Part shown: positions 13,001 through 44,176 of the stretch, one piece after another
Layout of the letters: every line of letters begins with the position of its first letter
How positions within the stretch are numbered: position 1 is the first letter of the stretch
Origin: Lepidodermella squamata
Taxonomy: Eukaryota > Animalia > Gastrotricha
Length of the DNA stretch: 64,000 nt
Direction of reading: 5' to 3'
NCBI GenBank assembly: GCA_047495785.1
Contig: JBLDXI010000001.1
Span: forward strand, 2,356,001-2,420,000
Translations under genes and position numbers: made by a program
The notes under the pieces: generated by a model
What the model was told of the DNA's origin: nothing
Seen by the model: only the letters and a program-made list of their open reading frames with translations
The model's database searches: none

Positions 13001-14165
13001 CGTTTTTCTACCGCGAGTCCTATTGTAAATTATGTAAGCCTTCTCATTTTTTCGCATAAAATGATTGATTTCAAGCTTTTTTGTGTGAAATTTAGCTGGG
13101 ATCTTGTTTAATTCGCCAATGATGCATAAATTTACAGAGCCCCAAATTAGCTACACAGTAAAGTTGGCTGATATATACCCTCAGGTACCGTAGGGGAGGG
13201 CAATTTTGAACAAACCCACGTTTTTCGAGGATAAAAAATCAGTCCTAATTCAGAAATCGATGATTTTTAATAGTAAGGTGTGTAAAATGAGCCCGATTTA
13301 TCAGCTCCGATTTATCGGAAAAATTTGGTGATTTTTGGATGTTTACCTGATTTTTGGCGATCGAAGACATTTATGGCTAAAGATGGACAATTAGCGGGCA
13401 ATTCTGGACGCGCTCATTTGCGTACGGAATGGCATTGTGCATTTTCAGTTTTTCCAGGTTTTGGGTCAAATTTGGAAAAATATTGCCCGATTTTCACCTG
13501 AACTTCACGTGATGCCCTGCAAAATTTTTCAATTTTTTCAAGATTATTTTAATAGATGTTTGGGAATATTTTGTAAAATAAAACCTATTTAAATTTTAAA
13601 TGATACCATGACCCACATTATTTTATCTTTAATTTTCATATTTTTATTAATTCCCCACTTTCTAGATGATTACGGCGACTCTTGTACAAAAGATTCTCAG
13701 TGCAACAATTTATTCATGATGCAAGACCGCATGGCATGCCGCGACGGCCTGTGCGACTGCAGCGACGGCTACGCACCCGTCACGGTGTCCCTGCTGCGCG
13801 CCGGCTGGGGCGCCGAGACCCCGCCCCGCTGGCTCGCCTCCGCAACGCCGCCCCGCGACTCGCTGCAGACGTTCTGCCTGCGTGACCACATCGGTGCTTT
13901 CATAGGCGGCCTCGGCGTCGGCTTCAACTGCACGATCGACGTGTTGGGCTCGCCGACGCCTCGCATCTGCGCCGACGGCCTCACGTGCCTGTTTTGCGCG
14001 GGCGACGTCGGCGAAGGCACGTGCGTCGAATTTCCACTACAACACCTCGTAACAACTACAATCGCTAGCAATTCAGTGTCGTCTACTTCACTACAACTTA
14101 CGTTTACAGTGAAAATATTCCCAGTTGTGTCATTGTTGCTTTGTTATTATCATTTTCGCCACTGA
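10077..14165 (+). CDS. Secreted, probably GPI-anchored Cys-rich EB-module-like protein, related to the gene at 2331
   Basis: Signal peptide MCQLRQFVISIWLVSTLNLLLA and a Thr-rich tract. Exons 10077-10277, 10585-10699, 12602-~13033 and 13667-14165 are phase-compatible. Modules include CSSDDQC, YGDSCTKDSQC..CRDGLCDCSDG and CTID..TPRIC..C..C. Hydrophobic C-terminus. Confidence 0.75.
11013..11187 (-). mobile_element. Tc1/mariner(pogo)-type MITE, family C copy 1 (intronic)
   Basis: TIRs TAccgtattttgttcc...ggaacaaattacggTA. The body 11094-11187 is the reverse complement of 36275-36372. Confidence 0.75.
11268..12150. mobile_element. Foldback-like element (~880 bp) with ~80-bp modular TIRs, intronic
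   Basis: 11268-11350 and 12066-12150 are near-perfect inverted repeats, each built from ~20-bp subrepeats (tttttcaacatcaaatta). A 9-bp-stem hairpin lies inside at 11478-11500. Confidence 0.75.
13234..13315 (+). repeat. Dispersed repeat family D copy (second copy at 34870-34945)
   Basis: aaaatcagtc(c/t)taattcagaaatcgatgattttt...gtgtgtaa...ccgatttatc occurs at both positions. Confidence 0.65.
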
Positions 14166-15087: not shown

Positions 15088-15516
15088 ATGGGCGTCTTCA
15101 CGACGACCGACAACAGCACTAACATTGTTGGATGGCTGATGATTATACTCGGCGTTATCACTTTAATCGGTCTCATTTTCATAATCGTCTACACGGTTGA
15201 TACAACCGGGGACGATGACTTCGTCGCCTCGACTACGCCTTCTCCAAGATACCTAGACGATAATTCAGACGAAACTGACCAAACGACAGTTGACCCGCGC
15301 GTCCCAAACTGGGTTACCCTGGGCGTTTTCGATCTCAAGCTGAATGAAGACGGCGAATGGGTTGCAATTTTCAGGAATCAACCGCCGACACTGAAAAACT
15401 TGGATGAAACGACAACATTACCAATGACAACCACGACGGATGAAGATTCAACGCTATCAACGGACACGGATTCAGGCGAAACGACGTTATTTCGATTAAA
15501 TCGAGATTCAATTTGA
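15088..15516 (+). CDS. Small single-pass membrane protein with Thr/Asp-rich region, unknown function
   Basis: Intronless 142-aa ATG ORF with the TM helix WLMIILGVITLIGLIFIIVYTV followed by an acidic/Thr-rich tail. Its 3' end recurs in decayed form at ~18470-18620. Confidence 0.6.
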   Translation: MGVFTTTDNSTNIVGWLMIILGVITLIGLIFIIVYTVDTTGDDDFVASTTPSPRYLDDNSDETDQTTVDPRVPNWVTLGVFDLKLNEDGEWVAIFRNQPPTLKNLDETTTLPMTTTTDEDSTLSTDTDSGETTLFRLNRDSI

Positions 15517-15726: not shown

Positions 15727-17882
15727 ATGGAGAAAACTGCTTGTTCGATTTTAGCATTGCTGATTGTACTAATACTCGGAAGCTCGGCGGATGAGATCAA
15801 TCCATGTGGGAAAGTTTCGGTACAGATTATTTTGATTTCTGGAAAAATAGAAAACCTCACCTTTGGATTGCCTTAATGTAGATTGCTAAGCTGAATTGCC
15901 GTCTGGCTGTTGCGATCGAACTCGGAGATAAGGAAGCTGTTAAGAATAGGAATTTTTGTCTCAACATATCGACAGATGATTTGGCAGATAAAATTCGGTT
16001 CAAGGCTGTCTACGAGCAGTGTCTCCCGAATATCACCAGCCTGCACCGCGCTGTTCTTCAGAACTCTTCAATTTCCGTAGTTAAGCCGCTGATCACAAAT
16101 CCTGAAGATGTTACTGCGGTTGAACCTTTGCTACGCCGGACGCCAGTGATGATCGCAATTCAACGCAACAATACCGAGGTGGCCAAATTACTCTTCGGCA
16201 TCATATTCGATCGAGCAATTTGTCATATTTCGACGGCGGTAAAGCGCTGAAAGAATCGGCTAAACTCAGAAACGTGGAGCTGTTGGAAATACTGCTGAAC
16301 AACGGCGTCGACGTAAATGCCAGGGATGAAGAAAACTTGACGGCTTTGGATATTTCGGCCGAAATAGGAGACATGCGAGGTGTGAAGCTGCTGCTCGATC
16401 GGAACGCTTCTATGGGACCTCCACGGGAATCTGCGCTTTTTGCAGCCATCGACAATAAGCATTTCGCGGTGGCAGATTTTCTGATTTCACGAGGTGCCAA
16501 ACTGCTGCCATGGTGGCTCGTCGCGGGTGTCCAGTTCAATATAAATATAGACTCGGTGCGATACCTCTTAGATCGTGGCGCATCGGTCAACTACAAAGGC
16601 TTTTTTGGCTTCACGGCTCTTGACATGGCGATTTTACAAAACTCAACCGAGATCGCTAAGCTTTTGCTCGCCAAAGGAGCAGATGTCAACGCAGTCAATC
16701 CATATTTCCCCAGCGAAACCCCGTTACGCAATGCATGGCGCAATGATAGAACCGGAATTGTTAAACTTTTACTTGAAAATGGAGCTAATGCGACGGAATT
16801 TGCGATCCTATCGATGCCTGCTACAACAACAACGACTGTTCCTAGAACAACAATTCATCCTAATGTAACCTTTTTATATTCTTCAGTTCCTAATACCTGT
16901 ATTTCCATTTTTCAACCAGATGCAGAAGTTCCTGGACTACGCAGTTAATGGAAGCATCGCCGACGTGAAAGAAATGCTAGCCACTGGCGAAATAAACACT
17001 AGGGATGGCCTCAAATTCGTCATCGAGCTCAATGCCTCAAGTGATGTAGTTCGGCATCTAATCTCTAGGCTTGGTCGAGTTAACATAACCGATGCTGAGC
17101 TTCTTATGGCTGTACATAACGGCAACTTGGCAGTCGTTGAAACTTTATTCGAAGCCGGGGCTAATGCAAGCTATCCATCTGCACTCTGGTCGGCGGTGTT
17201 TCGAAATAATTTTGCTATGACTGAGCTTATTTTGAGTCAGCAATCGTTCCGCAGTACGCCCCTCTATGAAATCAACAAATCCCATACAATGGCAGACGTA
17301 GAGTCTGCAGCAATTTTCGAACTGCTTCTTAACAAAACAGATCTGATCGTGAATTTCACTACTGTTGACACGCCCTTGATTTCTGCGGCAAGATTTGGAC
17401 AAATGCAGGCTTTGCGGTTGCTGCTGAAGCGTGGCGCGAACTTGACAGACGTCGGTCTATGTGGACACTCGGCATTGACAGCTGCTGCGAGGAACGGCCA
17501 CTTGGAGGCGGCTGAAGAGCTCATAAAAGCTGGCAGTGATGTCAACTGGAGAATGGCTGATGGCGAAATTGCTCTCCACTACGCTGCGTTCAACGGCAGG
17601 GTCGAAATGGCGAAACTTCTGCTCGACCACGGCGCCGATGTTGAGGCTCGCGACCGAATAGGTCGAACTCCTTTCGCATGGGCATCAATGCTTGGCAAAC
17701 ATGAAATGGCTGAATTTCTTCGTTCCAGAGGGGCCCAGTTGGTTGAAGGGCTCGAAGAGCAAAACGTTTCTGTGTCCGACTTTGCCTGGAGTTACAAAAA
17801 TAAAGAAGTCTCCAAAAATTACGGAGTGGTCTTTTCGTCGGGAAAGCTGAAGAAGAAAACCTGCCTGGCGATGATCCATTGA
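15727..17882 (+). pseudogene. Signal-peptide ankyrin-repeat protein, tandem paralog A; frameshifted at ~16204
   Basis: Exon 1 (15727-15819) encodes the signal peptide MEKTACSILALLIVLILGSSA. Exons 15882-16864 and 16920-17882 encode ANK repeats with a Thr-rich linker. Relative to paralog B there is a 2-nt insertion (atcATattcga vs atcattcga), giving a stop at 16248-16250. It could be a pseudogene, a null allele or an assembly error. Confidence 0.75.
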
Positions 17883-18820: not shown

Positions 18821-20933
18821 ATGAGGAAAACGGCGGTTATCCATATAGCTTGTTCAACCTTAGCTTTGTTGACTGCACTTAGCTTCGAGAGCACGGCAGA
18901 TTCCATTCAGACATGTGAAAACGCAACGGTAGATGATTTTGGATTGCCGGATATCTTCACTTAGATTTATTTCAAAACAGATTGCAGAGTTGAATTGCCG
19001 TCTGGCTGTTACGATCGATCTTGGTGATGAGGAAGCCTTTAAGAAGGAACAAAGCTGTCTCAACTTATCGAAAATCGAGTTGGCTGACAAAAACCGCTTC
19101 CAAGCCACCTACGAGCAATGTCTACCGAAGATTACAAGCCTGCACCGCGCTGTTCTTCAGAACTCTTCAATTACCGTAATAGAGTCGCTGATCGGCAACT
19201 CGGCAGGTGTGGATTCGATCGAGCCTTTGATACGTCGAACGCCTCTGGAAATCGCAATTCAACGCAACAATACCGAGGTGGCCAAATTACTCTTCGACAT
19301 CATTCGATCGAGCAATTTGTCAAATTTCCACGGCGGTAAAGCGCTGAAAGAATCAGCCAAAGTCTGCAACGTCGAACTGTTGGAAATGCTGTTGAACAAC
19401 GGCGTCGACGTGAATGCCACGGACGAAGCAAACTTGACGGCTTTGGTTTTTTCGGCTGAAAAGGGAGACTTGCGAGCTGTGAAGTTGATCCTCGATCGGA
19501 ATGCTTCCATCGAAAGACAGGCGCTTAAAGCAGCGATATCGAATCAGCATTTCGATGCGGCGGATTTTCTTATTGGACGAGGTGCCAAGCTGCTGCCATG
19601 GTGGCTCCCTTTTTTCGCCGACTCGAATCTTACCGAATCGGTGCGATACCTCTTAGATCACGGCGTCTCTGTCAATCACAAAACAACCCTCGACTTTACA
19701 GCTCTTCACATGGCTGCTTGGCACGGCTTTGTTGAACTCATTCAACTGTTACTGGCAAGAGGGGCGAATGTCAATGCAGTGACTTATTTCGGATCAACCC
19801 CGTTATACAGTGCATGGCTTAACGGTAAAACGGATGCTATGAAAATTTTACTTGAAAATGGAGCTAATGCGACGGAATTTGCGATCCTTTCGATGCCTAC
19901 CACCACTACAACGGCTGCTCCCAGTACTACACTCCATCCTAATGTGACCTTATTCCTTATCATCTACTTCATCTACTTCATTTCCTGTATTTTCATTTTC
20001 AAACAGATGCAGAGGTTCTTGGACTATGCCGTCAATGGAAGCATTGCTGGCGTGGAGGAAATGCTGGACAATGGCGAAATCCATCCTAGTGATGCTCTCT
20101 TCTCCGCCATCCAGTTCAACGCCACCGGCAATGTAGTTAGGTATATACTCTCCACCAGACATGGTCAAGTTCACATAAGCGCCACTTCTCTTCTTTATCC
20201 TGTGAAAAACGGCAACTTGGCAGTCGTTGAGGCTCTATTCGAAGCTGGGGCCGATGCGAGTTACCCATCAGTACTTTGGTCGGCAGTATTTCGAAATGAT
20301 TTCGCTATGGCTCGGCTAATTTTGAGTCAGCCATCGTTTCGTATAACGCCCCTCCATGAAATCGACAAAGTCGTTACAATGGCAGCCATAAAGGGTGGAG
20401 CTGTATTTGAACTGCTTCTTAACAAAACTGGTAATCTGAACTTGAATTTAACCTCTGGTGACACGATATTGGTTTCTGCGGCAAGATTTGGACGAATGGA
20501 GGCTTTGCGGTTGTTGCTGAAGCGAGGCGCCAACTTGACTGAGGTCGGTCTATGTGGACACTCAGCACTGACAGCTGCTGCGAGGAACGGTCACTTGGAA
20601 GCGGCTGAGGAGCTCATAAAAGCTGGAAGTGATGTCAACTGGAGAATGGATGATGGCGAAACTGCTCTGCACTACGCTGCGTTTAACGGCACAGTCGAAA
20701 TTGCCAAACTGTTGCTTGATCACGGCGCCGATGTTGAAGCACGCGATTGCACTGGTCGAACTCCTCTCGCATGGGCATCAATGCTTGGCAAATATGAAAT
20801 GGCTGAATTTCTTCGTTCCAGAGGGGCTCGATTTCTTGATGGGTATAATTCAGGGCGAACCATGTCTGTGTTCGAATTCGCGGCGAGCTATGAACATTCG
20901 AAGATGTTTACCTGCCTGAAACTCTTCTACTGA
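18821..20933 (+). CDS. Secreted ankyrin-repeat protein, tandem paralog B (intact)
   Basis: Exon 1 (18821-18928) reads MRKTAVIHIACSTLALLTALSFESTA (signal-like). Exons 18981-19943 and 20007-20933 encode more than 12 ANK repeats (e.g. GETALHYAAFNGTVEIAKLLLDHGADVEARD) with a central TTTTTAAPSTT linker and many N-x-S/T sequons. Confidence 0.85.
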
Positions 20934-21695: not shown

Positions 21696-24600
21696 TCACC
21701 ATAGATAGCACTTCTCCCTGCGATTCATCGTCGTCACGCTGCCACATTTGAACGCTCGAGCGAAATCGTCAGAATTCGCCAGCGTTCCAACAACTCTAAC
21801 AGCCGAAGGCGAATGAGCCGACATGTACACCTGATTCCGCAGCGCCTCTTTCGTCAGCAACGTGCAATAAGTCTGAGCGAATGACAAATAGAACAATTGG
21901 TCTGAATTAAGGTCCAGACCAGGCAGTTTCGCATCGACGCCGCCGATTTGACCTAGCTTTTGAGCAGTTTTATACGCGAGGAACGCAGATCTCAACCCGC
22001 TGCTATCCGCAAGATTTTCGCCCAAAGTTTGCCGGCCGTCAATGCGGTTCGAGTCGATAGTATAGGAATTGTACTGCTTAACAAAGCATTGAGTGTGATT
22101 TCTAAAAGTTGTGTACGTAATCGGCGACCACCAGTTTTTGATATTTCCAGCGCCGTCGAAAGCTTGACCCCTATCATCGAACGCATGAGTGATTTCATGG
22201 CCGGCCATGACGCCTAAAGATCCGTAACTCAACGCCTCAGGTAGGCCTTTCGTCAGGTAGAAAAATGGTTCATGCAATAGAGCAGCCGCGACAAAAATCG
22301 TGTTCTGGGTAACTTCGTATAGGCCATTAACGGTTTGGGGCGTTAACGACCATCGATTCACGTCAGGTTTCTGGCGGTAAGACCGTAGCGTGACTCGGAT
22401 TGAGTGGTTGTAGAAGTTGAATAAATTAGCCGTGTGGTCGGTGTTGGTGATTGTGAAGTTGATGTAATTTTCGTCGACGTAACTGCTGTTTCGGAGCCAG
22501 TCCGGGTACGCGACATCCATAGCGAGGTCGTCGAGTTTACCTAGGGCATTCGTTCGCGTCCAACCGTCCATCCATACGGCGTTTGAGATCAGTTGGCGAT
22601 AAGAGGATTTGACGTTGTTGACTAATTCAAGTGCCTAAATCGAAAAAAATCGGAAACAAGAGTATTAAAAAAATAGGAATTCAGTGAGGCAAAACCTCAA
22701 TTCCTAAAATTTGAACGACAAATTTCGAAAAAAAATTAATTCCGAAAATTTCAAAAATTAATAATTTCATATTTAAAAATCTCAAATTTCAAATTTTCAT
22801 AACTTCAAAATTCAAAAATTTCGAAAATTTAATTATTGAAAAAATCAAAACTAAGCAATAAGGCGAATCTTAACTTTTATATTTGCCTTTTATCGAATCC
22901 AAAATATTCAGATGGATCTCAAAAAAATTAAATAAAAATCGAGCGTTATTCATGGGAGAATGAATTCCGGAAATTTTCAAGTTAAAAAGCTCTTAGCTTA
23001 CCTTTTGCTTTTGATTATCAGGAGAGAACCGATCCAAGTACATTTTGCCGAGAGCAACTCCCAACTTTTGATTAGTATCACCCAAGCAATCCAGCCACGG
23101 CTCAGGCTGGCCACGATTGCCGCTGTAAACCGTCAGAAATTTAGTATAAGCCGTCTTGAAGTCGCTACCCATCCGCGGGGCATAAGTCGAAACAGCCAGT
23201 AGTACAATATAGTTCTGCAGGGTTTTCACGCCAGCCGGGGTCGCAAGGTACGAGTCGAGGAGGGATGCCAAACTCTTGAAGTACGGAAAATCGAGGACAA
23301 TAACATTTTCCTCCAGCGAAAAATCGACGTTCAACCCAATGCCGGTGTAGAGGTTTGTCAAGAAGCGGTCCCATTTGATGTAACTAGCATTGCCGTACAG
23401 GTATTTCAACGGCATTTCTCGGTACAAATACGTCACGCTTCGCCGGTCAATTTGCGAAGAATGAATCGCGGCTAATTTTTGCTCGAGTAACACAACGTCT
23501 TGAATCGCTTTTGTATCAACATTTTTTGACCCAGTTATCGACTGGACAAAGGTTGTTAGCTTTTGAATATAAGCCACCATAACCGGGTCTTGAGTCAACG
23601 ATTTGTTGAGGTAGAAATCTCGGGTGTTCAAACCGAGACCCAATCGGCCCCGGTCCAGGAATAAAACATTCCGCGACGTGTTGTAGTAGTCAGGCGTGAC
23701 TCCGATCAAGAAAATGCCGTTCATTGTATAGCGGCTTCGTTTGATAACCGCGTCCTCGAACGAAAATTTCGTCGTGTCAAAGGTTGAATTTTCAAACGCG
23801 AAACCGCCCAGCTCGTCGACCATCTGCCGTAGTCGCGTCACGCCTCGCAGCTCCGTCGTCACGGTGTTTAAACACGCCTGGTAATAGGCGCGAACTTTTT
23901 TAATCACCGGGTCGTCGGTGGTTAGCGGCTTTTCAATGACAGTTTTGAGTTGTTTCATGATGACAGCTTCGCGTTTTGTAAATTGTGTCGTCATTTTTTT
24001 GCCGACGGGGATTTCTTCGAGTTGCGCAAAACCGCCGCATGCGTAGTCGTAGAAATTCACGCATGGATCAGCTGTGACGTTCATTGAGGCGATAATGCGA
24101 CCAGCGGTTCGGATACACTCCGTACTAGTACATAACGATGATTTCCTCGCTAAATAAAAATTTTAAATAATTAGTTTAATAACAAAAAAACTCCTCCTTA
24201 ATAAAATTTTCCCGTGAAATTTTCAATTTTTCAGCCATTTAAAAAAAATCTAATTTTTTTAGTTAAATTAAAAAATCTGAATCTAAATTTTTTTAAATAT
24301 TATATAATTGTTTCCCTTGACCCGGACAACTTGGAAATAAATTAAAATTATGAAAATTGGTATTTCAGAAAATTAAGAAAAAAGTACAATTTTTAGCTTA
24401 AAAATTAAAAAATGACCAAAACTCACCATTTGTTTTAGAAGCGATACTGAGAGATATCGATAGCATTAAAATGGTGAGTAATAGAATAAGGATAGGTGTG
24501 ATGTATACGACAGCTTTCAGCCATTGCTGCTTGTGGTCCCACCATTGCCGGGTCGTGTAATAAGCGTACCATAACCGGCTAAATTTACTAGTTTTGTAGG

Positions 24601-24724
24601 TCAAATCCGGCTCGGAAACGTTGAAATTTGTATCGAGACCAGCGGTTGTTGTTGTTCCCGGTGGATTTCGGGCATTACCACTCCCTACAAAGCTGGTACC
24701 AAGTGGGTACTGGTCACCTACCAT
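21696..24724 (-). CDS. Neprilysin/endothelin-converting-enzyme-like metallopeptidase (M13), type II membrane protein
   Basis: Exons 24724-24427 (cytoplasmic tail plus TM), 24149-~23001 and ~22634-21696. Motifs CxxxxC..DPCVNFYDYACG, VNGLY, HEITH zinc motif, GENLAD, HSP..RV and terminal CYLW. Confidence 0.93.
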
Positions 24725-25738: not shown

Positions 25739-28700
25739 TTAAGGTGGGCAAAGTGCAGAAAATGACGCGGTGCAGCCTTCGCCAGTTGCGCCCTTACTCG
25801 TCAGCAATTTAACGATATCAGACTTGCCATCATGAGCCGCGTACATCATGGCAGTCCAGTTATCCTGATTGCGCCGGTTAAGCTCCGCCCCTCCAGCAAT
25901 CAACCGCTCAACCACGCCAATACTACTGTAACGAGCCGCGTACATTAAAGCGGTCCAGCCAGACTGGTCAAATTCGCCCGGATCAGCGCCTTGATCCAGT
26001 AAGTAGTCGATAATTTCCAATTTATCATTCCTCGCCGCTTCAAGTAAAGCAGTCTCGCCGAATTTATCCGTCATATTTAGAACAGCCCCGTTTTCAACCA
26101 GGTATTTGACAATATCCAAGTGGCCATTCGCCGATGCGAAAAGAAGAGGAGTTTGGCTGTAGAGGCTTTCAATGGCGTTGATTTCAGCGCCTTTATCAAT
26201 AAGGATCTTGACGACCTCAAAACGGGCCTCGGGCGTTCCCGTGCATTGAGTCACCCTGTGTAGCAGCGTCCCATTTTCATTCGAATACCGGCAGGTATGG
26301 CGAGACTGGTCGCGCCAGTTCGGGTCGAAATGTCCGCCCGTTTCTAGGTCGATTTGACTGATCAAGTTTTTAACAACGTCGATTTTTACGAAATTCCCAC
26401 AGGCTACGCTGAGTTCTTGGTATAGTTGCAGGGTGGCTGGTAGCATTTCGCAGTAGCCAAGGTCCGGGATCCATCTGCCATTTGCGTGGCATTTAGCTTG
26501 AAGACTACCGACTCCCTGGAATCCGCGGGTACACATTAGGGTGACAAAAGAGCCAGCAATCACCCGTTCACCCTGGGTGACATCTCTGACGTAGGTTTCG
26601 TCACGAACTGAATGGAAGCCTCTATCTACAACGCAGGGTGCTAATAAAAATGATAATTAAATTTTAATTTTAATGAAATGAATTTTAATTACCCAATTCG
26701 CAAGCCTGGGGCTTTGTCCATGTCCCATTGTTCAAACACCTTATGCTGTTATCGTTAACCGATAGATATCCGTCCAAGCAGACAACTTCCCGTTCCGTTC
26801 CACTTGCGTTGCTTCCACGCTTGATATAACCATTTTCAACTGCTGGCAAGATTCCACACTCGATTTTGGCGCATGGAGCTGGTTCGGACCAGGTTCGAGT
26901 TGGTAGGCAGGTGATGGATTCAGTTGTCGTTCGATAGCCGGCGTAACATTCGACACGCCTGACTGCTCCGAAATTGAACGAACTTCCAGGCTCAATCCAT
27001 CCATTTTCAATTATTGGAACCTCGCCGCAAGCTAAACAAATTTTAAACCAAATTTGATTAAGGTGGATTTTCGAACCTTTGCCAAGTGTGGACCCTAAAT
27101 TTAGGGTTCCGGATCTAACTTTGAGGCTCCATAACTAATTTCCCCAAATGTAATTTAGTGCTGTAACCTCAATTCTGGTTTAAATTATTGAACCTTTTTA
27201 ATTTATACCTTGACAAGATCCAGAAACTTCCCAAGTTCCAGAATGTAAGCAAATAACAGTTGCAGATCCAATTAGTGAATAGCCATCATCGCAGACAATT
27301 AAGCCAACAGTTTCGACCCGGCCAAGGATGATGACGCCATTTACAATTTTCGGAGGAACTTCGCATTGACCTCGGCATTTTCCAGGTTCGCTCCAACTTC
27401 CATTTGGCTGGCAGAGAATCGAATCTGAGCCGATCAGTTCGAAACCAGGTTCACAGCTAACCATCCTGACCGATCCAGCTTTACTAGTTCCATCGGATAT
27501 GGTCCCATTCGTAATCTCAGGCAAATTGATACAATCTGGGAAAAAAATCGAGCGAAATTGAAGGAAAACGTTAAATTATCTGTTTACCTGGCAAACATTG
27601 CCCCGATAATTGCCAATAGCCGTCTGACATGCAATGAACCTCGCCAGTTCCAGTTAACGAAAAGCCACTTAGGCACTCAACTAATCCAACAGATCCTATT
27701 GTCTTCTGAACGATAGTAACTCGACCGTTCTCAATTGTAGGCGGATCGTCGCAAGCTGTGAGGAAATAATTGAAATTAATTAATTCCTATAAAATTTGAA
27801 ATTTACCTGGTAAGCAGAACCCGGATACAACCCATTTGCCAGAATTTGAGCAGATAACTTTACCGGATCCGAGTAATGAGTAGCCATTTTCACAAGATAG
27901 CTGGCTGGTGGTACCAACGCAGCGTGAAGTGACGTTAAAGCCTCCTCCGGGAATTATCGGCAACTCGATTGGACAAGCGACGGCTGAAAGAAGATTTAAA
28001 AATAATTAAAAAAATAATTAATAGATTAAATTAATTTTGTTAATTTTGTTAATTTATTCATGCCTTTGCTTTCTGCAGTAAGATAAGTTCCAATCGTGTT
28101 GTCGCACTCATCGACCTGAATCGGCGAGCATAGGCCACTTTGTACCATCAAATTGACCAAATAAACGCGTCGTCTCATCGCAGCTCGATGAAGCGGGGTC
28201 AGCCCGTCCTTGTCCAGCATTGAACAATTTGCTTGATATTTCTCCAACAAAAGGGCCACCAAACTCGCCGAACCCGTTTCTACGGCTAGAGATAACGGCG
28301 ATAGGCCATCGAAATCCAACTGAGAAAGAGTCTGCGATAATTCGCCGCTATATTTGCCGAATTTTGATAAAATCAAATCGACAACGCCATGCGTTGATTC
28401 GTCCATGCCAATAGCGATATGTAAAGCGCTGTAGCCGTACGAGTCACCCTGAGACGCGGCGCTTGGGTCAGCCGAGGCAACTAGGTCAATGACGGTCATA
28501 TCGCGGGAAATTACGGCTAAGTGCAAGGCGTTTTGACCTTCGCGATTGGGTAACGCGACATTGCAGTGACGGGCGAGAAATCGGATCATTTCCAACGAAG
28601 CATTGTGACGAATTGCCAGGGATAACGCCGAGTCCCCAGTGCTTGGATGAGTTTCATTCAGCGATCTACCCTAAAACATATATAATTTTGATTTTTTAAT

Positions 28701-30421
28701 TTTTAATAATAATTAATTAAATTTAATAACTAATTTTATTAATTTAATTATTTTTAATTTTAAAATTTGAAGAAGAATTTACTGCGTTTTTTCAATTTTA
28801 CCTGTTTATCGGCCTTTATCAGTGCTTTGGTCATATTGAAATTTCGTTTCTCAATCGAATATAGCAAAGCTGTTAGACCGTCTTTATCTCGTTGGGTTAG
28901 GTAGAGCCATTTCGAAAATTGCCGAATAAATTCGACATAATTCGTCCGAACAGCTAAATGCGCCAATCCGAGACCTTTTTCATTCGCCAGTTCAGTATCG
29001 GCCTTTTCAACTTCAATCAAATGCCGAACTAAATCGATTGATTTGCGGCGGGAAATTGCCAGCATCAACGGGGTCATCAACCCATCCTCGCCATCTGTCG
29101 AATTCCCAGCAACTGAAAACGACCTTACATCAATGCCGTCTTGAAATTGAAATTTTATATCAGCAGCGAGAAAATGCAGCATTTTCACGTCATTAGCTAA
29201 ATGAAGAGCGGTATAGCCGTGGATATCTCGAGCTAGTCGATTAGCAGTGAACTCTCGAAACATAAAATCAGCCGAAGAAACCGAGCCTGAAATAACGGCC
29301 CTTAAGAACGGAGTAATCCCCTGGCTATCGCGCGATTCGACAAGATTTCGATCTTTCCTTATCAACCAATGCGCGATTCGTTTCGCCGACATTGAAAATT
29401 CGAACAAAACGCGTAATGACGATGAATCGAGCGAAAATACGTCATCAACTGTATCATTCATCGAAACCAGGGCGTGTAGGGCTGTTTCGTTATTCGAATC
29501 CAAAATCGAGACATTCACGCCAAATTTAATCAAATTTTCCGCAATTTTTTCGTGCCGAAATTTCGCAGCTAAATGAAGCGGTGTCCCTCGCTTATCAGAC
29601 TCGTTGTTGTACAAACAAATCGGGTCCTCGAAAATTGACGGGTCAACCTTCTTCTCGAAAATTTTCACTAGAAATTCGGCGCTGTTATTCCGGATAGCGT
29701 AGCAAATCGGCGTCTCGTTATTCGCGTCGTAAGTCGTGAAATTGAAAAGTGTCCAGAATGAGTCTAAAAACTGGGTCATCCCCGATTCTGCCACTAAATG
29801 CGATACCGTTTTATTAGCCTCGCAGCAACGGGATTCGATCAGTTCGTAATGATCATCGCTTCGACTCAGCAAAAATTTGACGAGATCGAAATTGCGGTGG
29901 ATGATCGCCTCGTGAATCGGCAGTCGATTTGCCGATTTCTCGCGATGACTCATCAAAGCGCCGAATTCGTCAACTAACAGCGATGCGATTTGCCGCGTTT
30001 TGCCACTCGGAGCTTTTGCCAGGTAGAAAAGCGGCGTTTTGCGAGCGTTATTCAACGCATTAGCCAACTCGGGATTTTCAGTTAAACTCGATTTAACGAT
30101 ATCAAAATTCCCGGATTGACACGCTAGGTGGATAGGTAACTCCCCGAGAAAGTTGAACGTTTTTACCGATCCGCCGTTTAATTTGAGAAATTTGAACGAT
30201 TCACTGGCGTTGAAAAGTGCCGCGATATGTAGCGGGGTGTTTCCGGTTTGATTATCGCGAATTTCCCGCGCTGAACTGTTGAAAAATTCTGATAGTACGC
30301 GAGTAATAATGTCAACGTCGTCATGCTTGATCGCCTCGAATAGCGAATCCCTTCCCAAGGATTCTAGATCAAAACTTCGAACTGAGGATATGATAATAGC
30401 AATCAAACTAAGAATTTTCAT
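25739..30421 (-). CDS. Secreted ankyrin-repeat / Sushi (CCP) mosaic protein: SP - ANK array - 7x Sushi - ANK array
   Basis: Signal MKILSLIAIIISSVRS. ANK exons 30421-28802 and 28670-28064. Phase-1 Sushi exons 27983-27807 (1 domain), 27755-~27588 (1), ~27535-27208 (2), ~27032-26691 (2) and ~26641-25739 (1 Sushi plus ~6 ANK). Each Sushi matches C-(x)-P-x-I-x-NG...C..G(F/Y)....C...G.W....C. No TM segment seen. Confidence 0.8.
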
Positions 30422-31372: not shown

Positions 31373-34300
31373 ATGCATCTGCTAAGCTATCGCCGGGTTT
31401 TACTGCAAGCGCGGCATTTTTTCGGTTTACGTTATCTCAAAAAATTGGCTATATTAACGCTAACTTCAACCAGGCGCTGCCTTTTCGACACTATTTACTG
31501 CCGAACGACTCGGAGACAAAAGTTTCTTATCTTCTTCCTATTGGTTAGTGATTTCGAGATTTTTTGAAATTTTTCGAATTTTTCGAATTTTAGATTGTCC
31601 TTCTAATATGGTACGATCAACCTGAAGATGAAGATGGAAATTTTTACAAGCCCGTGGCAGGTATAAAAATAAAAAAATAAAAACTATTTTTTATAGATAA
31701 ACATTTTATTTTTCATTATTTTTAATATTTTTATATTTTTTATAGAATCCACAATTTGCCACTCGGCAAAATGTATCGTCGAAGCGAGTCAAGCTTCGCT
31801 GAACTTGAAAATCGATCCATGTTCAGATTTTTACGAATTTTCTTGCGGGCAATTCCGCGGCCGAGTCGAGCACGTGACTGACGTTGTCGGGATTTCAAAA
31901 CATCGAATTCGCCACATTTTAGAGCAAAATTCCACCGATTTTCAATCCGATTCGATTGAAAAAGCACGAATCTATTACAACTCATGCATGACCGCTGACA
32001 TCAACCGAGTTGGTGCAATCGAAATTTTGAGGATAGTTACCAATCTCGGCGGTTTTGCCGTGGCTAGTAACAGCTATTTACCTGGTTATTCTGCCTTCGA
32101 GAAAAATTTGCTGCTATTTTGGTCGAATTATTCTTCGAATGCGTTCTTCAAATTTCAAATCGGCCGGGATGAGTTGAACCCGACAACCAATGTCGTTCAA
32201 CTGGTACCACCCGACCTCGGCCTGGGACCTGGAACTCAAAATATTTACCTGACGAATAATTCAATAATTCACGACCGAATTTTAACGGCTTACGCGTGGA
32301 AATTGGAGCAATTCTCGCAATTTGTCATGCTAATTCCTAACGATGGGTCGATTCAAGCGGGTAGGACTAACGCAAAGGCGCCGATGACCAGGCGCGATAT
32401 AATCGATGTCATTGATTTCGAGCGAAAACTCGCCGAATTCATGCCGAAGCAAATCTATAAAACAGTTGTAAATAACACGTGGTTCGAAAAGAAAATCGAG
32501 GGTATGACCAACATAAAATGGCGGTCGCTATTCGAAAAGCTATTCATCGATTTAACTCGCCAAGCTTTAAAGCCTCAGACCGAAATTTATTACCTCCACG
32601 TGTATTCCGAGTCTTTCTTCAACAATTTGTTTACGCTGATGAGTGAAATGGTGCGGACGGATCGCGGCCGGCGAGCTTTGCATAATTATTTAGTCTTCCA
32701 GGCGTTGAACGCCCATGCGGCTAAATTTAATCATTTCTTCCTTAACGCCGAGGTCGAGTTGCAGAAACACGTTTTTGGCAAGACTGTTGTGCATCCACGA
32801 TGGCGCCGATGTATCGAAGAAACTGAGACAGCCTTTGGACTAGCCATCGGATCGGCATATATTGCAAAATACATCCCATCCGAGGCTAAAGCTGAGGTGA
32901 AATCTTTTTAATTACGATTTAATTTAATTTAATTTTTTAATTATGATTCATTTCCAGGCACGAAAAATTATCGATGCTGTAAAAACCGCCTACAAGGCCA
33001 AAATTAAAGCGGTCGATTGGATAGATGATGAAACGAAGCGAGGCGTGATAGAAAAGCTCGATTTGCTGGCGATTTCTATCGGTTTCAGCGATAAAATGTT
33101 GGAAAAGCCGGCTGTTGAAGCTTATTATAAAGATCTGCAAATGTACCGTGGCAATTATTTCGCTAATCGAATTTCCATTCATTATTTTACGACTCAACAA
33201 AACCTTTTCGTAAGTCAACATTTCTATTACTTCGGCAACTAGTAGGAAATTCAACCGATTTTATTAAATTCAATCTACCGAGAGAATATTACATCTTTTA
33301 TCCGCGATTTCACCGAAGAAATAACAAATTTACAGGAGAAAACTCGGGAAACCCCGATGGTAACTGGTTCGGTAATTTTCGGTATTTTTACCCGGTTGGA
33401 CCAAATTTCTCCGGACTTTCTTATGCCCATTAATAGGTGATATGCTTGATTACTATTTTCGTGATTTTTTGTAATTATCTAAAAAACCTCTGGCCATTAG
33501 ATGTGACTTCGTCTCTCATTTTAGAGTTCCTAAATCTTTTTCCGTGAGTTTTCTTTGCTTGCGTTACCTATGGGACACATTATGATTTTTCGAGTTTTAC
33601 CTTGGTATCTCAGTTTTGAAGTTGAAGCCTAAACAACAAATCTCACTGTAAAAACGCGTATTTTGCGCTATCAGCGGTCAGTTACACTTTGCTGAACCGA
33701 TATCGATTTCCGGTATCGATTTTACAGATAAGTGATTTTTTCGATATCGGTAGTCGAAGAGGCAGCATTAAAGGGATTTACGTAAATGAGGGTAACAGTT
33801 AGCTCTAATAATGAAAAATCCAAATCCCATGGTTATATTAAGGTGCATAATGAAAGGAAAAAGTCAAAATCTCAAAAAATTCGCGAAAAATTAAGCGCTC
33901 TTTATTTAAAAAATTCAATTTTAGCTAAAAATAACCGAGATTTTGAAAATTTTACATCGACCTAAAATTATATTTTGTTATAATACTTTTTTGCAGTTAT
34001 TAAATACGGCTCCGGTCCCGCCAATTCGACCTCTCTTGTCTCCCCTGGCCAATAACGCCTACTACGAACCCATAGAAAACCACCTCGCAATTTTAGCCGG
34101 CCTCCTCGCTCCTCCCACATTCTTCCACTCGTCAAGCCATGTACCAATCGCAATGAACTACGGCGCTTTAGGCTCGCTAGCTGGCCACGAGATGACGCAT
34201 GCGTTCGACTCACGAGGCGGCGGCTTCGACAGCACAGGCCATTTACGGCCATGGTGGAGAAACGAAACAAAGGCGCGGTTTCAACATCGCGGTAAATGCT

Positions 34301-34707
34301 TCGTCAAGCAATACAACCGCTATTTAGCCTTTGGTAGCAACGTCAATGGCCAGAGAACGCTGGACGAAAATCTCGCGGATAACGCCGGGCTTCAAATCGC
34401 CTACGACGCCTGGAAATCAGTGAATGAGCCGATGAAAATCGACGATAGCCACTGGAGTTATTACGTCGAGTCGACGGCCGAAAATTTCCTTTTAAATTCT
34501 GAGCGGTTATTTTTTATAGCCTACGCCCAGCAGTGGTGCGCCTATGAGACGCCGGAGACAATCAAGTACCAACTGCTGAAGAGTGAACACGCGCCGTATC
34601 GGTTCCGCGTCAATGGCGCTGTGTCAAATATGCCGGCTTTCAGTGAGGCGTTTCGATGTCCGAAAAATTCGCCGATGAGTGCGAGAACGAAATGCTCAAT
34701 TTGGTGA
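31373..34707 (+). CDS. Neprilysin-like metallopeptidase (M13), paralog 2
   Basis: Approximate exons 31373-31543, 31593-31660, 31746-32896, 32959-33209 and 33997-34707. TM FLIFFLLIVLLIW, ICHSAKC..DPCSDFYEFSCG, NNAYY, HEMTH, ENLAD, HAP..RV and terminal CSIW. Confidence 0.9.
33320..33570 (+). repeat. Dispersed repeat family B (copies at ~33320-33570 +, ~36596-36825 +, ~55505-55677 -, ~58553-58720 +)
   Basis: Shared core aaaccc(g)atggtaac(t/a)gg..cggt..ttt..ccggtt, with extended similarity such as ttgattactatt.tcgt and tctcattttagag. Non-coding and probably a non-autonomous TE. Confidence 0.7.
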
Positions 34708-37838: not shown

Positions 37839-39476
37839 ATGTGGCGAGTTTTGACTACTTTCGGCCCGAAAGCTGAGCGTAACACCAAACCACTTCTGGA
37901 TCAATCGGTCGATCTAAGTGTGATTGAGCCGAAAATCGAACCGAGGCCTGAGTTTGGCGAAATTTGGCCGCGCACCTCAACCCTTCGATCTCAACGTCCA
38001 GCCTCTTCTTCCTCGTCTAACGATCGATCCATACCTTCTCCGCTCCCTCAGGTATTTATTTAAATTTTTCAATATTTAAATTTTAAAATTTCAATATTTT
38101 GTTGAATTTTGAATTCCATTTTCATTTTTCAATATCAATTTTCTGATTTTATCTTTTAGAATCCCGGCAACAATGACGACTACAAGCTCGTCCGTATGCT
38201 TGGCAGCGGTGGCTTTGGCGAGGCTTACTACGCCCGTCGGAAATCGGCCGCCACCTCGAAATCGACCGGCGTTGTCCTGAAACGAATGCGCACGTCCGAT
38301 AAGCACCAAGCGAAACGCCTCATGTGGGCACGTCGCGAGGCCGGCATTATGTCGGCTCTTTTTCACCCGCACGTCGTTCGGTTTTATCACGCCTTCGAAG
38401 AAGCCGCAACTGTTGTCATCGAAATGGAGTACTGCGACGGCGGCGATTTGCGCGCGTTCATTCGCTCTCGCAATGGTTCTTTTATTGCTGAGCGTCAAAT
38501 TCGCCACTGGTTTCATCAACTCACCCAAGCGGTTGCTTACATTCACGACCTCGGCATTGTTCATCGAGACATCAAATCCAAGGTAAACTAGAAAAATGTT
38601 TTGAAAATTGTGAGAATAAATGTGAAAATTTTGAAATTGAAAATGAAAAATTAATTATGATTTATGGAAAGTTTAAGGTGGATTTTTTAATCTTAATTTT
38701 TTAATTTTTTAATTTATTTTTGTGTTAATTTTAATTTTATTAATCATATTTCTTCAATTTTTCAGAATGTTTTCCTTTGCGATAACAATCGATCTGTGAA
38801 GCTCGGCGATTTCGGTTCGGCCAAGTACCTTGTCGATCGGCGCACTAATGAACCCAGTCTCGCCCGCACACGCGTCGGCACCAGCACCCATCACCCACCA
38901 GAATTCTGCCGCCGCCTACGTCGCGAGTACGGCACCGAGGTCGACGCATGGGCCATGGGCGTTCTTCTCTTCGAAATGGCCACGCTACAAATGCCATTCC
39001 AGGCCACGTCTCAGGTCGATCTAAGCGCGAAAATTCGCAGCGGTCAACGCGATCACGAAATTGCACCATCGATCTACTCGAACTCGCTGCGTCGCCTCGT
39101 CGATGTTTTGATGTCTCAAGACCCGGAAGAACGGCCGACCATGAAGCAGGTGCTTGATGATCGTTATTTCGTGACCTATGCTCGTTTTGTGAGGCGAGTC
39201 AATCGTAAACGAGCCCGCGCGTCGTCCGAGGCCGCCGCTGCTCTACTACCCGTCGCGCTTCGCCGAAACGACCGCCATCCGTCTCGCATGAATGAAATCC
39301 GCCCGCAATCGACTGGTCATGAAATGCTATTGACTCTTCTCGCTACTTCATCGCAGCAACAACAGCTACTTCAGCAGCAGACAAGTGGCATCGCCTCGGC
39401 ATCGGGATCGACCGGTAATTTATCGCCGCCGCCAACACTTCACTGGCTGTCGACTCAGCCGTCGCATTGCGTTTAA
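37839..39476 (+). CDS. NIMA-related (NEK-like) Ser/Thr protein kinase
   Basis: Approximate exons 37839-38051, 38160-38582 and 38767-39476. Motifs LGSGGFG, VVLKRM, HPHVVRFY, MEYCDGGDL, HRDIKSK|NVFL, KLGDFG, DAWAMG and ERPT. Confidence 0.88.
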
Positions 39477-40334: not shown

Positions 40335-42486
40335 ATGCTCAATTTGTTGACCTACGCGATTATTATTTCCGCTAATTTGTTACCAAAATGTGAGGCGGGA
40401 ATCAAGCAAAAGGTCATGGTTGTTTCTTTCGATGGCTTTGCACTTCATTATCTCAAAGCGGGCCGCAATTTGCCGTCTTTCGCCCGCCTACGCCGCGAGT
40501 CAACTTACACCGAATCCGCTCAAAGTGTCTTTCCGAGTAAATTTGCATTTTCCAACATTTTCCAAATGTTTACCTGAATTTGTAGGTGAAACGTTCCCTA
40601 ATCATTTTTCGATTGCAACTGGCCTTTACCCGGAATCCCATGGCATGGTATCGAACATTTTCTATGATCCAGATCAAAAATTTCTGTACAACGCGATGGG
40701 CTACGGTCTTGATTCTCGGCCCGATTTGGACTCTGCAGTTTGGTGGTCAGCGGTAAGTTTCAAAAATGAAAATAATTGAAAAACAGGATTTTAAAATTTA
40801 AATTTGATTTTTTTTTAATTATTACTTTAGGAGCCATTATGGGTCACAGCGCGCAAGCAGGGCCTAAAAACTGGGACATCGTGCTGGCCAGGCGATCGGG
40901 CTAAATACAAACCGGGCGATATGCAAGCGACGTTTCACCGAACCGATTTCACGATGGATATCCCATTTCGGAAACGCATCGACGAAGCCATTGAATGGTT
41001 GACGCGATATGACGTAGACCTTGCCTACCTTTACAGCTTCCAACCCGACGCGACCGGCCATCGTTTCGGCACGAATTGCACTGAAATGGAGGACACGTTG
41101 AAGAAGGTCGATGCCGATCTGGGTTATCTGTTAGATTCGCTTGAAAACGCTGGTTTCAATACGATGAATTTTCATTTGATCATCGTTTCCGATCATGGCA
41201 TGTGGAATCTGGAGCGCGAGGTTGTTTTCGATGATTACATGAATACGACGGAGCTGTTTGAACGAACGACTCGATTCGGTGCGAATGTCCCGTTTTGGCC
41301 TCATCCAGGTCGAGAGGAAGAGGCGCTAAAAACCCTCCAGTCGGTTGCCGAGAAGCATAGCGATTTATTTCAGGTAAATTACAGATAATTATTTTGACAT
41401 TCGAATTCAAAATCAATAATTGAGCTGAAGTTTCGATCGATATAAGAAAAGATCGTATCTGGTTTACCGCCATTTTTCCAAAAAATTCCTATCCAGGATT
41501 TATCTCGGAAATGGTTGATAGAAATAAAATTAAAATTATGGCTTTGGAGTCGGAACCTTGAAATGAATCATTTGTGATTTTTTTGTTTATTTTTTCTGTT
41601 TTGCGAATATGCTAATCAAGAATTGCGTGATGACAATTTTTTCCTCTGAATGCGGTATTTTTTTATTTTCCTTTGTTAATTGGGCATGGCTTTCGGGCTG
41701 TGCCCCACAATCAATCTGAGAAAATCATTTGAAAAATCCGGGTCACTCTGGATGCTAGGAGGCTTTAACGAGCTTCACCGCGGCCCAAGCCGCTAATAAA
41801 ACAAAAACAAATAAATGATTATTGATACTGCTCGGTATCAATCGAATTTAGGTGCGCAATAAATCCTTATTTCGGTTGTAAAAAATTATTCTGAAATTGA
41901 ATTTTCATCGTCAATTTTTCTTCAAGCCAAACGAGCTAATCCATCATTTGAATGTATTTTCAGGTCTATCCGAAGGCAAAACTACCCGAGCGGTATCATT
42001 ATCGAGCAAGTCCGCGAATCCCATCGATTGTCGCTGTCGGAAAAGTTGGCGCCTATTTGACGGCGACTCACAAATTTTCAATGAAGCGCCTGAAACTAAC
42101 GGCCGGCCACGGTTACGACCCTAGCGATTTCCGCATGCAGCCGATATTTTTCGCCCGCGGGCCGGCTTTTAAACGCAATTTCGACGCCTCCCCACTGACG
42201 AAAAATATGTCCACTAAGGTAATTCAAATTTTTTCGAAATTACTCAAGTGAATTTTTGATATTTTTTTAGGACATTTACGCGGTTGTTACGGAGCTCATT
42301 GGGATGAAATATCCGCCACCCGTGAACGCTTCTTACGCCAATGTTGAAGGCCTGTTCCGGGACGATTACAAATTTTTGACCGTCATCGATTTGCGACCCC
42401 GATCTCAATCAAATTCTGCCGCGACCTTGTATGGAATTTACGCTGCGACAATGTTACTACTGCTGAAAATATGTATTTCGAACTGA
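40335..42486 (+). CDS. Ectonucleotide pyrophosphatase/phosphodiesterase (ENPP4/5/6/7-like), probably GPI-anchored
   Basis: Signal peptide, VSFDGF, PS|ETFPNH with the Thr nucleophile, [30 protein letters not shown] and a hydrophobic C-terminus, spread over about 5 exons. Confidence 0.9.
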
Positions 42487-42700
42487 AAAATTGCTCCGGA
42501 ATTTTGATAAATGTTTACCTAATAATTATAAATAAGTGTTTAAATTATTAAGATCCTGCAAATACTGCCACCTAATTTTACGCCGTAAATGTGTTTTTTG
42601 TTCGATTTTTCTATGAATAAAATAAAACCTAATCGGCTCGCGATATAGTTGTAAAAAAAATTATATTTTCTTTCACAAAAATTCAGATATTTTTTTGAAA

Positions 42701-44176
42701 ATGAAGCTCTACTTTCGTGATACTCCTGATGTGGTTCAAACCGATAACCTTAGCCGCGTCTTGCTCAATCTTTTCGAATCGTCAACCAACACAGATATTG
42801 ACCTAATTCTCGACGATGGCTCTCGAATTAAAGCTCACCGCTCGATTTTGTCAGCGCATTCGCCAGCCTTTGCACGAATGCTCGGTGTTGGCAGTTTTAA
42901 GGAGGGTTTATCGGGCGAAGTGAAATTACCTGGAAAATCGAAACCGGCTGTCGATTTGCTGCTGCGGTATTTTTACTCTGGCTGCATTAAAATTGCCGAT
43001 GTTGATCTGGAAACGGCGTTGGCTGCTTTTGCTATGGCCCACGAGTACGAGGTGGACAAGTTCTTCAAAACAATGGCTAACCTACTGATAGAGGTGGCTA
43101 ATTTTGATTAAAATAACACGAATTTTTTTAAAAATATTCGTAAATTTTAGCATGCGATCGATGAAGACTCAGTTTGGCAAATTTTCGAACTGGCCTTGCT
43201 ATTCAACGAGGGCGAACTACTGGACGAGACCCGCGATTTCACCTACTCAAACGCGACAGAATGCCTGAAAAATGAATCATTTGTTCAGCTGTCAAAATCG
43301 GCTCTTCTCAATGTTTTGTCTGATGACTATCTATTTTCGCCGGAAATAAATGTCGCTCTAGCGGTTTGTCGGTGGCAAGAGCACAACAATTGCAGTGAAA
43401 TCAAAGAGGTGCTTGCAAAAATTCGATATTCGTTCATCAAGTTGGATGGCTTCACCCTCGAAGATATCGCTGCCTTGTATGATTTGTTGAAAGCGAATCA
43501 AATCGATTTAAAAAGTGTTGGAAAATCTGGTTCTGAGGCCAAAATGGCGAGAAAATTGTTTGTTCGATCCTACGGTATTTATCTAGGAACAAATCAATTT
43601 GATTGAAAAACTTATTTTCTAATTTGACAGCTCTACTAGATAATGGCACTCAAGTCGTTGGTATCGATAGCAAAATTTTGCTGGAGCCTTCCGTGCTGCG
43701 TGAAGACTCGGAGGTTGATTGTCAGGTTGCGAGACATGACTCTGTCATCATTACACTCCCGCGACCTCGGACAATTTCATCAATGTCATTCAGCATTCAT
43801 AGTAATGGCAAATCTTCCTGTTATTGTATTTTCGAGGTACGCGAGTCAAAAGCCGCGCCCTTCGAGGTGCTGCTCCCTTACGACAGCTCGAGCTTTCACT
43901 ATGGAGTGCAGATTCTTGTATTTCAAGCCCGGAAGATTTGTGAAGGTTGGACGTCATTTTGATACTTCTGATCTGTTTATACTTTCAATCTTACATCTAG
44001 TTAAAATAACGGGTGGCTCAGCATACCAGCATACCAGGTTCTACTCGATCCGTGCGTTTGAATGTCCGTCTACGACGTACCAACCGAAATTCGGTCAAAT
44101 TTTCGCTAAAGAAAGACCACCGTCTAATTTCAAGCTCTATCAGCTGAATGATATTGACCCAGATAGCATTTATTAG
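42701..44176 (+). CDS. BTB/POZ-BACK-discoidin-like protein, BTBD9-like paralog 2
   Basis: BTB (TDIDLILDDGSRIKAHRSILSAHSPAFARML), BACK (FVQLSKSALLNVLSDDYLFSPEINVALAVCRW) and C-terminal QILVFQARKICEVKITG..IRAFEC. Intron positions match the gene at 5147-7128. Confidence 0.82.

Follow-up and report, generated by a model that had tools for sequence, protein, structure and literature searches.

Complement control protein (CCP, or Sushi) modules are almost entirely extracellular, and few protein-binding scaffolds are as common as the ankyrin (ANK) repeat. Here we describe a predicted gene that combines the two, located on the minus strand of a 64,000-nucleotide (nt) stretch of contig JBLDXI010000001.1 (positions 2,356,001 to 2,420,000; assembly GCA_047495785.1) from the gastrotrich Lepidodermella squamata. 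We refer to this whole stretch as the window and number all positions within it. The gene, at 30421-25739, would encode a chain of the order ANK-(Sushi)x7-ANK. A full-text literature search returned only one characterised secretory protein containing both ANK and Sushi, RON9 of Toxoplasma gondii. RON9 is a rhoptry neck protein with coccidian and Cryptosporidium orthologues, and it carries a signal peptide, 5-6 ANK repeats, one Sushi module without the Trp, PEST-like repeats, and a C-terminal transmembrane (TM) segment (PMC3299665).

Like RON9, the predicted gastrotrich protein pairs a signal peptide, ANK repeats and Sushi modules in one secretory chain. The number and order of the modules differ, since about 19 ANK repeats are followed by seven CCPs and then by five or six further ANK repeats, and the protein has neither a TM segment, as judged by hydropathy, nor tandem coding or PEST repeats; in each respect the comparison is with the published description of RON9, not with its sequence. 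The setting also differs from the apicomplexan one, as the window contains M13, trypsin, BTB-BACK, SLC13 and ENPP genes together with compact AT-rich introns. The locus holds a real, unusual mosaic gene within the known class of CCP-containing extracellular mosaics. From the sequence, we lean towards the reading that it is one seven-exon gene whose product is a soluble secretory-pathway protein of ~1,379 residues that serves as an extracellular adaptor.

Joining at six AG acceptors yielded a seven-exon model without internal stops, with a coding sequence (CDS) of 4,140 nt that specifies 1,379 amino acids. The ATG is at 30421, with an in-frame stop codon just upstream, and the TAA is at 25741-25739, followed by AATAAA at 25669 and 25653 (70-86 nt downstream; gene end at 25741-25648). 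These are exactly the limits that the first-pass annotation, made from the letters alone, had given for the feature. Exon 1 (30421-28802) contains the signal peptide and ANK repeats 1-14, a divergent array rich in N-X-S/T sequons. Intron 1 (28801-28671; GT-AG, phase 0, 131 nt, 10% GC) falls within ANK repeat 14, and exon 2 (28670-28064; GC 0.50) adds repeats 15-19 and then a short Cys-containing tail. Beyond intron 2 (28063-27984; phase 1, 80 nt, 12.5% GC, donor AAG|GCATGA, acceptor TTTCAG) lie four exons that encode only CCPs: exon 3 (27983-27807, 177 nt; CCP1), exon 4 (27755-27588, 168 nt; CCP2), exon 5 (27535-27209, 327 nt; CCP3 and CCP4), and exon 6 (27031-26693, 339 nt; CCP5 and CCP6). 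Exon 7 (26640-25739) starts with CCP7 (26635-26450) and runs through a linker of 55 residues and the C-terminal ANK array (26278-25766) to the stop. All of these features are on the minus strand.

Five of the six introns are GT-AG and one is GC-AG; their lengths range from 51 to 177 nt, and their acceptors have polypyrimidine tracts. The GC content of the introns is 10-33%, that of the exons 44-53%. Across the whole window the observed/expected ratio for CpG is 1.33, indicating no methylation-type depletion. Intron 5, which at 177 nt is the longest intron of the gene, harbors a perfect 16-nt palindrome (ACCCTAAATTTAGGGT) at 27092-27107; it occurs once in the window, with 0 occurrences expected by chance.

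Searches of the separate exon pieces against Pfam placed six of the seven CCP modules above the gathering score for Sushi (PF00084; cut-off 20.7 bits). Exons 3 and 4 scored 25.3 and 37.7 bits, while exons 5 and 6, each with two matching stretches, scored 59.9 and 71.1 bits. CCP7 is divergent and has 11 extra residues in a loop; it came slightly below the cut-off at 19.2 bits, and it scored 16.5 bits against a hidden Markov model (HMM) made from CCP1-6 alone. The four Cys at typical CCP spacing and the conserved Trp before the fourth Cys are present in every module, giving totals of 28 CCP cysteines and seven tryptophans, all intact; CCP1 has one extra Cys. Pairwise identity among the seven is 18-43%, and they are therefore old, diverged modules rather than recent duplicates. 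In a six-frame scan of the window, CCPs were found only in this gene. The closest matches in the PDB were CR1, CR2 and factor H for the CCPs of exon 5 and factor H, CR1 and CR2 for those of exon 6; the modules also resemble DAF and factor XIII B, at the family level only. The AlphaFold2 run on exon 7 left CCP7 unmodelled (pLDDT <50) and was uninformative for this module.

The first-pass annotation had proposed seven CCP modules between two ANK arrays, several of them missed by the track of listed open reading frames (ORFs). Both the Pfam matches and the Cys/Trp pattern bear out this order. The gaps in the ORF track are also real: the CCP2 exon has no listed ORF, CCP5 has none in the right frame, and the ORF listed for CCP7 begins inside the module.

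The ANK arrays were also recognised in the Pfam searches, with Ank-clan E-values of 1e-48 for exon 1, 1e-25 for exon 2, and 1e-35 for exon 7 (Ank_2, 7.6e-48, 7.2e-25 and 2.5e-34, respectively; Ank_4 in exon 7, 5e-35). Apart from a weak, sub-threshold Ank_KRIT1 match, no domain other than Ank and Sushi was detected by Pfam in the exon pieces. The AlphaFold2 model of exon 1 (mean pLDDT 86, pTM 0.80) has 14 consecutive helix pairs, and its best Foldseek matches were the long solenoids of ankyrin-1 and AnkB (8cs9 and 4rlv; TMq 0.72-0.74). By inspection, exon 2 contributes five further repeats, bringing the N-terminal array to about 19, which we predict to form one continuous solenoid. This part of the protein had been described as a sequon-rich ANK region of ~750 residues, which agrees with the 742 residues and 16 sequons that we counted.

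For the C-terminal array, the AlphaFold2 model of exon 7 reached pLDDT values of 90-98 over residues 141-280 of the piece, with five helix pairs in residues 123-281. Repeat parsing and the model together give five or six repeats, five of them confident and one a possible cap upstream, within the 55-residue linker. The earlier description of this array as consensus-like holds, given its pLDDT above 90 and its 42% identity to generic ANK proteins. The tail that follows contains two Cys and lacks a hydrophobic segment of the glycosylphosphatidylinositol (GPI) or TM kind. Compared with the ANK ORF at 18933-20930, the sole neighbour that was compared, both arrays showed only repeat-level similarity of 25-37%. 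We therefore rejected the idea that the gene is a close paralogue or recent copy of that ANK gene.

Searches for relatives were made with exons 1 and 7. A phmmer search with exon 1 against 1.84 billion cluster representatives returned only giant generic ANK proteins, through many repeat matches, and a local HMM check of the best 150 matches detected CCP in none of them. The word-indexed homologue search with exon 7, which covers proteins of 164-523 residues, listed 120 matches, all of them ANK-only and covering about half of the query. A metagenome scan with exon 1 yielded one unrelated ANK locus without CCP, and exact look-ups of three ORFs of the window found none on record. The claim that this architecture belongs to no characterised family thus stands insofar as none was found among the best 150 exon 1 matches or the listed exon 7 matches; it needs to be qualified by RON9, which combines ANK and Sushi on a different plan.

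Residues 1-16 of the product (30421-30374, minus strand) have the appearance of a signal peptide by inspection, with a basic n-region, a hydrophobic core of 11-12 residues, and V-R-S at positions -3 to -1 before the predicted cleavage site. This hydrophobic stretch is too short for a membrane anchor. A hydropathy scan and the translation revealed no further TM-like segment, no GPI-type tail, and no KDEL-type endoplasmic reticulum (ER) retention signal in the protein. Because none of these was found, the product would most likely be soluble and released rather than held at a membrane.

The distribution of sequons is consistent with this route. The N-terminal array has 16 sequons compared with 6.1 ± 2.2 in shuffled sequences, a 2.6-fold excess (z 4.0), and z exceeded this value in only 3 of 150 unrelated long ANK proteins. 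Exon 1 has 13 sequons where 4.7 are expected, 12 of which are outside helices in the AlphaFold2 model. For several, the sequon Thr is the conserved residue of the TPLH motif, or the sequon occupies a turn between helices. Elsewhere in the window, similar excesses were seen in ANK ORFs 16920-17879 (9 sequons vs 2.2 expected) and 18933-20930 (16 vs 5.1), and none was seen in the kinase, BTB/BACK, M13 and trypsin ORFs used as controls. We regard the excess as supportive of secretion, not decisive. Together with the N-terminus, it leads us to infer signal-peptide cleavage, glycosylation and secretion of the product.

CCP7, the linker and the C-terminal ANK array share a single open ORF (26656-25742), and thus a Sushi-ANK fusion is encoded directly, with no need to invoke splicing. 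The link from the N-terminal ANK array to CCP1, in turn, would be made by the predicted splice across intron 2, and this is the weak point of the model. The earlier single-gene proposal is consistent with the stop-free model and the CCP7-ANK ORF, and it depends on a putative GC-AG intron to attach the N-terminal half. The segment to be removed (28063-27984) resembles the other introns of the gene in its GC content. Only phase 1 donors after exon 2 restore the CCP frame, the best being AAG|GCATGA at 28063; donors in phase 0 or phase 2 were rejected since stops are met after the acceptor, and a GT donor at 28157 was rejected because it uses a non-coding frame. The only in-phase GT alternative, a weak AAA|GTGGCC with the intron starting at 28138, would remove 75 nt of exon-like sequence (GC 0.49). 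The Sushi part contains no in-frame ATG with a hydrophobic segment after it. Its 28 CCP cysteines point to folding in the ER, for which exon 1 holds the only available signal peptide, and joining of the two parts is therefore favored. Overall, we consider a single gene with a full-length product probable.

Upstream, a donor CGCA|GTAAAT is present at 28783 on the minus strand; it falls in phase 1 when the reading of exon 1 is extended beyond the phase-0 donor. Joined to the CCP1 acceptor, it would give a hypothetical isoform in which ANK repeats 15-19 are skipped.

Several observations weigh against a single secreted product, and those at intron 2 are the most direct. Its GC donor is non-canonical, with a mediocre context, and no GC-AG intron was accepted elsewhere in the window by our intron scan; the scan demanded a stricter consensus score of GC donors than of GT ones, and the intron 2 donor falls short of it as well. 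If intron 2 is retained, the ORF continues for 12 more codons and ends at 28026, making an ANK-only product possible. An unlikely alternative follows from this: the principal or sole mRNA made from the upstream promoter keeps 28063-27984 and terminates at the TAA at 28026, giving a secreted ANK-only protein of 754 residues, while the Sushi-ANK exons are either an alternative 3' extension that is seldom used or a unit of their own. The moderate consensus of the donor, the lack of a phase 1 GT donor near the end of exon 2, and an AATAAA at 28058 would all fit such an arrangement. However, this AATAAA is upstream of the stop, and such hexamers arise by chance in AT-rich introns. The 12 extra codons derive from a 9-nt AT-rich tandem repeat (28031-28055) typical of introns here. 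CCP1 begins in phase 1 at the TTTCAG acceptor only 42 nt past the point where the retained-intron ORF stops, too short a distance to fit a promoter. Furthermore, the Sushi-ANK part is fully open over 637 codons, with perfect CCP Cys patterns and five consistent phase 1 splices, and it has neither a start codon nor a signal peptide of its own.

The remaining points against a single secreted product concern secretion and conservation. ANK repeats in animals are overwhelmingly cytosolic. The signal peptide was assigned by eye rather than by a predictor. A sequon z above 3 occurs without a signal peptide in 8 of the 150 generic ANK proteins, and the location of sequons in loops does not discriminate, as the Asn residues of the N-terminal array are found in loops whether or not they are part of a sequon. 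The same array also carries nine Cys. Finally, neither an orthologue nor a protein of the same architecture was found in the searches with exons 1 and 7.

If the full-length secreted protein is made, we envisage the following. A cleavable signal peptide would direct the product into the secretory pathway, where its N-terminal solenoid of ~19 ANK repeats would probably be N-glycosylated at many loop positions. The seven CCP modules would then form a semi-rigid rod. Behind it would come another ANK domain, small and with five or six repeats, and a short tail with two Cys. In solved CCP proteins each module spans ~3.5-4 nm, and a spacer of seven would therefore measure roughly 25 nm. We propose that the protein would be a non-catalytic extracellular adaptor in which both ANK surfaces bind protein partners and the CCP spacer holds them apart. 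As a speculation, the two C-terminal Cys might permit covalent oligomerisation. A bridging function, as an opsonin, adaptor or cascade regulator, was suggested in the first-pass annotation; judged from the architecture, it is the kind of role that such an arrangement may allow.

Introns 2-6 are all in phase 1 and intron 1 is in phase 0. Exons 3-6, the CCP-only exons, are symmetrical exons of class 1-1 whose lengths are multiples of three. A crude scan for short AT-rich introns that keep the frame open picked up 42 candidate introns elsewhere in the window, their phases divided 15/15/12. Since about one third of this background is in phase 1, five out of five stands out at this locus, even if the five cannot be counted as independent events. 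Class 1-1 modules with a phase 1 intron on each side are the classical signature of mobile extracellular modules (PMC8001218). The CCP modules of this gene are accordingly of the shuffling-competent kind.

Whether the gene itself was assembled by exon shuffling is a separate matter. Inherited CCP modules carry phase 1 boundaries in any case; three of the module boundaries (CCP3/4, CCP5/6 and CCP7/ANK) have no intron; and no donor gene for the CCPs was identified, with no close CCP relative retrieved in searches that did not include the CCP block alone against the large databases. For these reasons assembly by exon shuffling is plausible and compatible with the data, not demonstrated. The earlier proposal of phase 1 exon shuffling is thus confirmed as to the class 1-1 CCP exons; the shuffling itself is a plausible origin rather than a demonstrated one, given the 18-43% identity, the missing donor, and the intronless CCP7/ANK boundary.

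The genomic neighbourhood bears on how the gene should be viewed. A gene at 56290-60324 on the plus strand begins with ORF 56290-56646, in which a textbook signal peptide runs directly into ANK repeats. Its ORF 57670-58410 contains, in one frame, ANK repeats, a poly-Thr (poly-Thr/Gln) linker, and the first part of a trypsin domain, the rest of which is at 59320-60093 and 60148-60324. Two ANK genes duplicated in tandem, 16220-17882 and 18933-20933 (plus strand), share near-identical stretches and have poly-Thr mucin-like linkers. Thus, ANK arrays behind signal peptides and beside extracellular-type modules are a recurrent local theme, and this is the most interesting aspect of the locus. It seems that this genome makes use of ANK arrays in the secretory pathway, and we propose that the gene at 30421-25739 is a member of a local group, specific to the lineage, that encodes ANK proteins of that pathway, including one with a trypsin domain. 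Upstream of the first tandem ANK gene, ORF 15088-15516 encodes a TM segment followed by a Thr/Ser/Pro/Asp-rich stalk, and it is a possible membrane-anchoring first exon of the gene at 16220-17882.

Genes for M13 (neprilysin-like) peptidases lie on both sides, at 21696-24724 (minus strand) and 31805-34707 (plus strand). In the former, the first exon (24398-24724) is of the type II TM kind. The latter is head-to-head with the ANK-CCP gene across about 1.4 kb, where a shared bidirectional promoter is possible. Around the ANK cluster are ordinary metazoan-like genes for cytosolic or membrane proteins: BTB-BACK genes at 5316-7134 (minus strand) and 42695-44176 (plus strand) and, all on the plus strand, a NEK-like kinase (38796-39476), an ENPP-type phosphodiesterase (40390-41388), and an SLC13-type transporter (45619-47857). 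Also on the plus strand are two ORFs for small Cys-rich proteins (12493-14165), one with a signal-peptide-like N-terminus, and a single ORF of 605 residues (49233-51050) for a Pro/Lys/Gln-rich low-complexity protein, for which Pfam gave no match and an exact look-up in public collections was negative. No tRNA or Rfam matches were found in the window. All conserved-family proteins of the window that were tested (M13, trypsin, NEK-like kinase, SLC13 and BTB) have diverged strongly from the entries in databases. For the M13 C-domain, identity reaches at most 38%, to Hyalella azteca, an amphipod, and 33% to Steinernema, a nematode; the trypsin ORF had a single match at 30% identity; and the kinase, BTB and SLC13 pieces are divergent from PDB entries.

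A broader reading of this neighbourhood, which is tentative and which we think unlikely, is that the lineage has co-opted the ANK repeat, otherwise a scaffold inside cells, as a general extracellular recognition module, much as leucine-rich repeats are used in Toll receptors and in the variable lymphocyte receptors of lampreys. There would then be a whole family of glycosylated ANK proteins with signal peptides, in which the fusion partners are CCP rods, mucin-like stalks and serine proteases, and the ANK-CCP7-ANK protein would be its soluble, bivalent recognition or opsonin-like component.

It is also conceivable, but improbable, that the protein is the regulator or recognition part of an extracellular protease cascade, in the manner of a complement regulator. 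The CCP rod would in that case bind a thioester-protein or a protease, such as the ANK-trypsin protein whose gene lies at a distance of 26 kb, and specificity for the target would come from the ANK heads. The best matches of the CCPs among solved structures (CR1, CR2, factor H and DAF) and the presence in the window of a signal-peptide-ANK-trypsin protein and two flanking M13 ectopeptidases are what this proposal has in its favor. Yet the PDB matches reflect generic family-level similarity to proteins with many CCPs, and no C3/TEP-like gene or other complement component was detected among the window ORFs that were screened. The closeness of genes says little when the genome is compact, and the similarity of the ANK arrays to those of ANK ORF 18933-20930 is confined to the repeat level. 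Very improbable, finally, is a recently disabled gene in which a T-to-C change at the intron 2 donor uncoupled the Sushi-ANK exons and left them to decay: the GC donor is the sole non-canonical site and no orthologue was found that could show constraint, but the 4.1 kb CDS is without frameshift or stop, the 28 CCP Cys and seven Trp are intact, and GC-AG introns are processed by the normal spliceosome. Taken together, an ANK-only main product and a disabled gene make up a minor, though not negligible, part of what we consider possible.

Returning to the single, full-length secreted protein, the occurrence of ANK and CCP in one chain suggests that ANK solenoids may be adaptable to the oxidising, glycosylating environment of the secretory pathway as extracellular binding heads. 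The argument is strengthened by the neighbours of the gene, which include other genes of the signal-peptide-ANK kind and, as one of these, a gene with a trypsin domain at its end. The finding touches on the way in which existing modules give rise to new systems of extracellular recognition, and it would offer a natural counterpart to engineered ANK binders (designed ankyrin repeat proteins, DARPins). At present, the value of the predicted gene model is that of a lead.

Compared with known systems, the N-terminal array resembles those of ANK1, ANK2/AnkB and ANK3 in being a long, continuous ANK solenoid. Canonical ankyrins are cytosolic proteins in which 24 repeats are followed by ZU5-UPA-death domains, whereas the gastrotrich product would have a signal peptide and CCPs, and Pfam detected no ZU5, UPA or death domain in it. 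The latrotoxins of spider venom are rare cases among animals in which a long ANK array acts outside the cell that produces it, and latrotoxin ANK structures (9go9 and 7ptx) were among the Foldseek matches. However, latrotoxins are characterised by a helical pore-forming region at the N-terminus and have neither a classical signal peptide nor CCPs; Pfam revealed no such region in the protein described here.

The CCP block, with its tandem modules of four Cys and a Trp, is like those of factor H, CR1, CR2, DAF, C4BP and factor XIII B, and the gene shares with vertebrate CCP genes the use of 1-1 exons that encode either a single module or a pair. ANK repeats are absent from all of these proteins, and the likeness is at the family level, with no complement partner evident. 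In selectins, a recognition domain is held off its anchor by a run of CCP modules, and a binding head on a CCP stalk offers a mechanical analogy for the spacer and adaptor model. Selectins differ in having a single head, a C-type lectin domain, an EGF domain and a TM segment, whereas the predicted protein has ANK arrays at both ends and no membrane anchor. Another analogy is factor H, which binds different partners at the two ends of its CCP rod.

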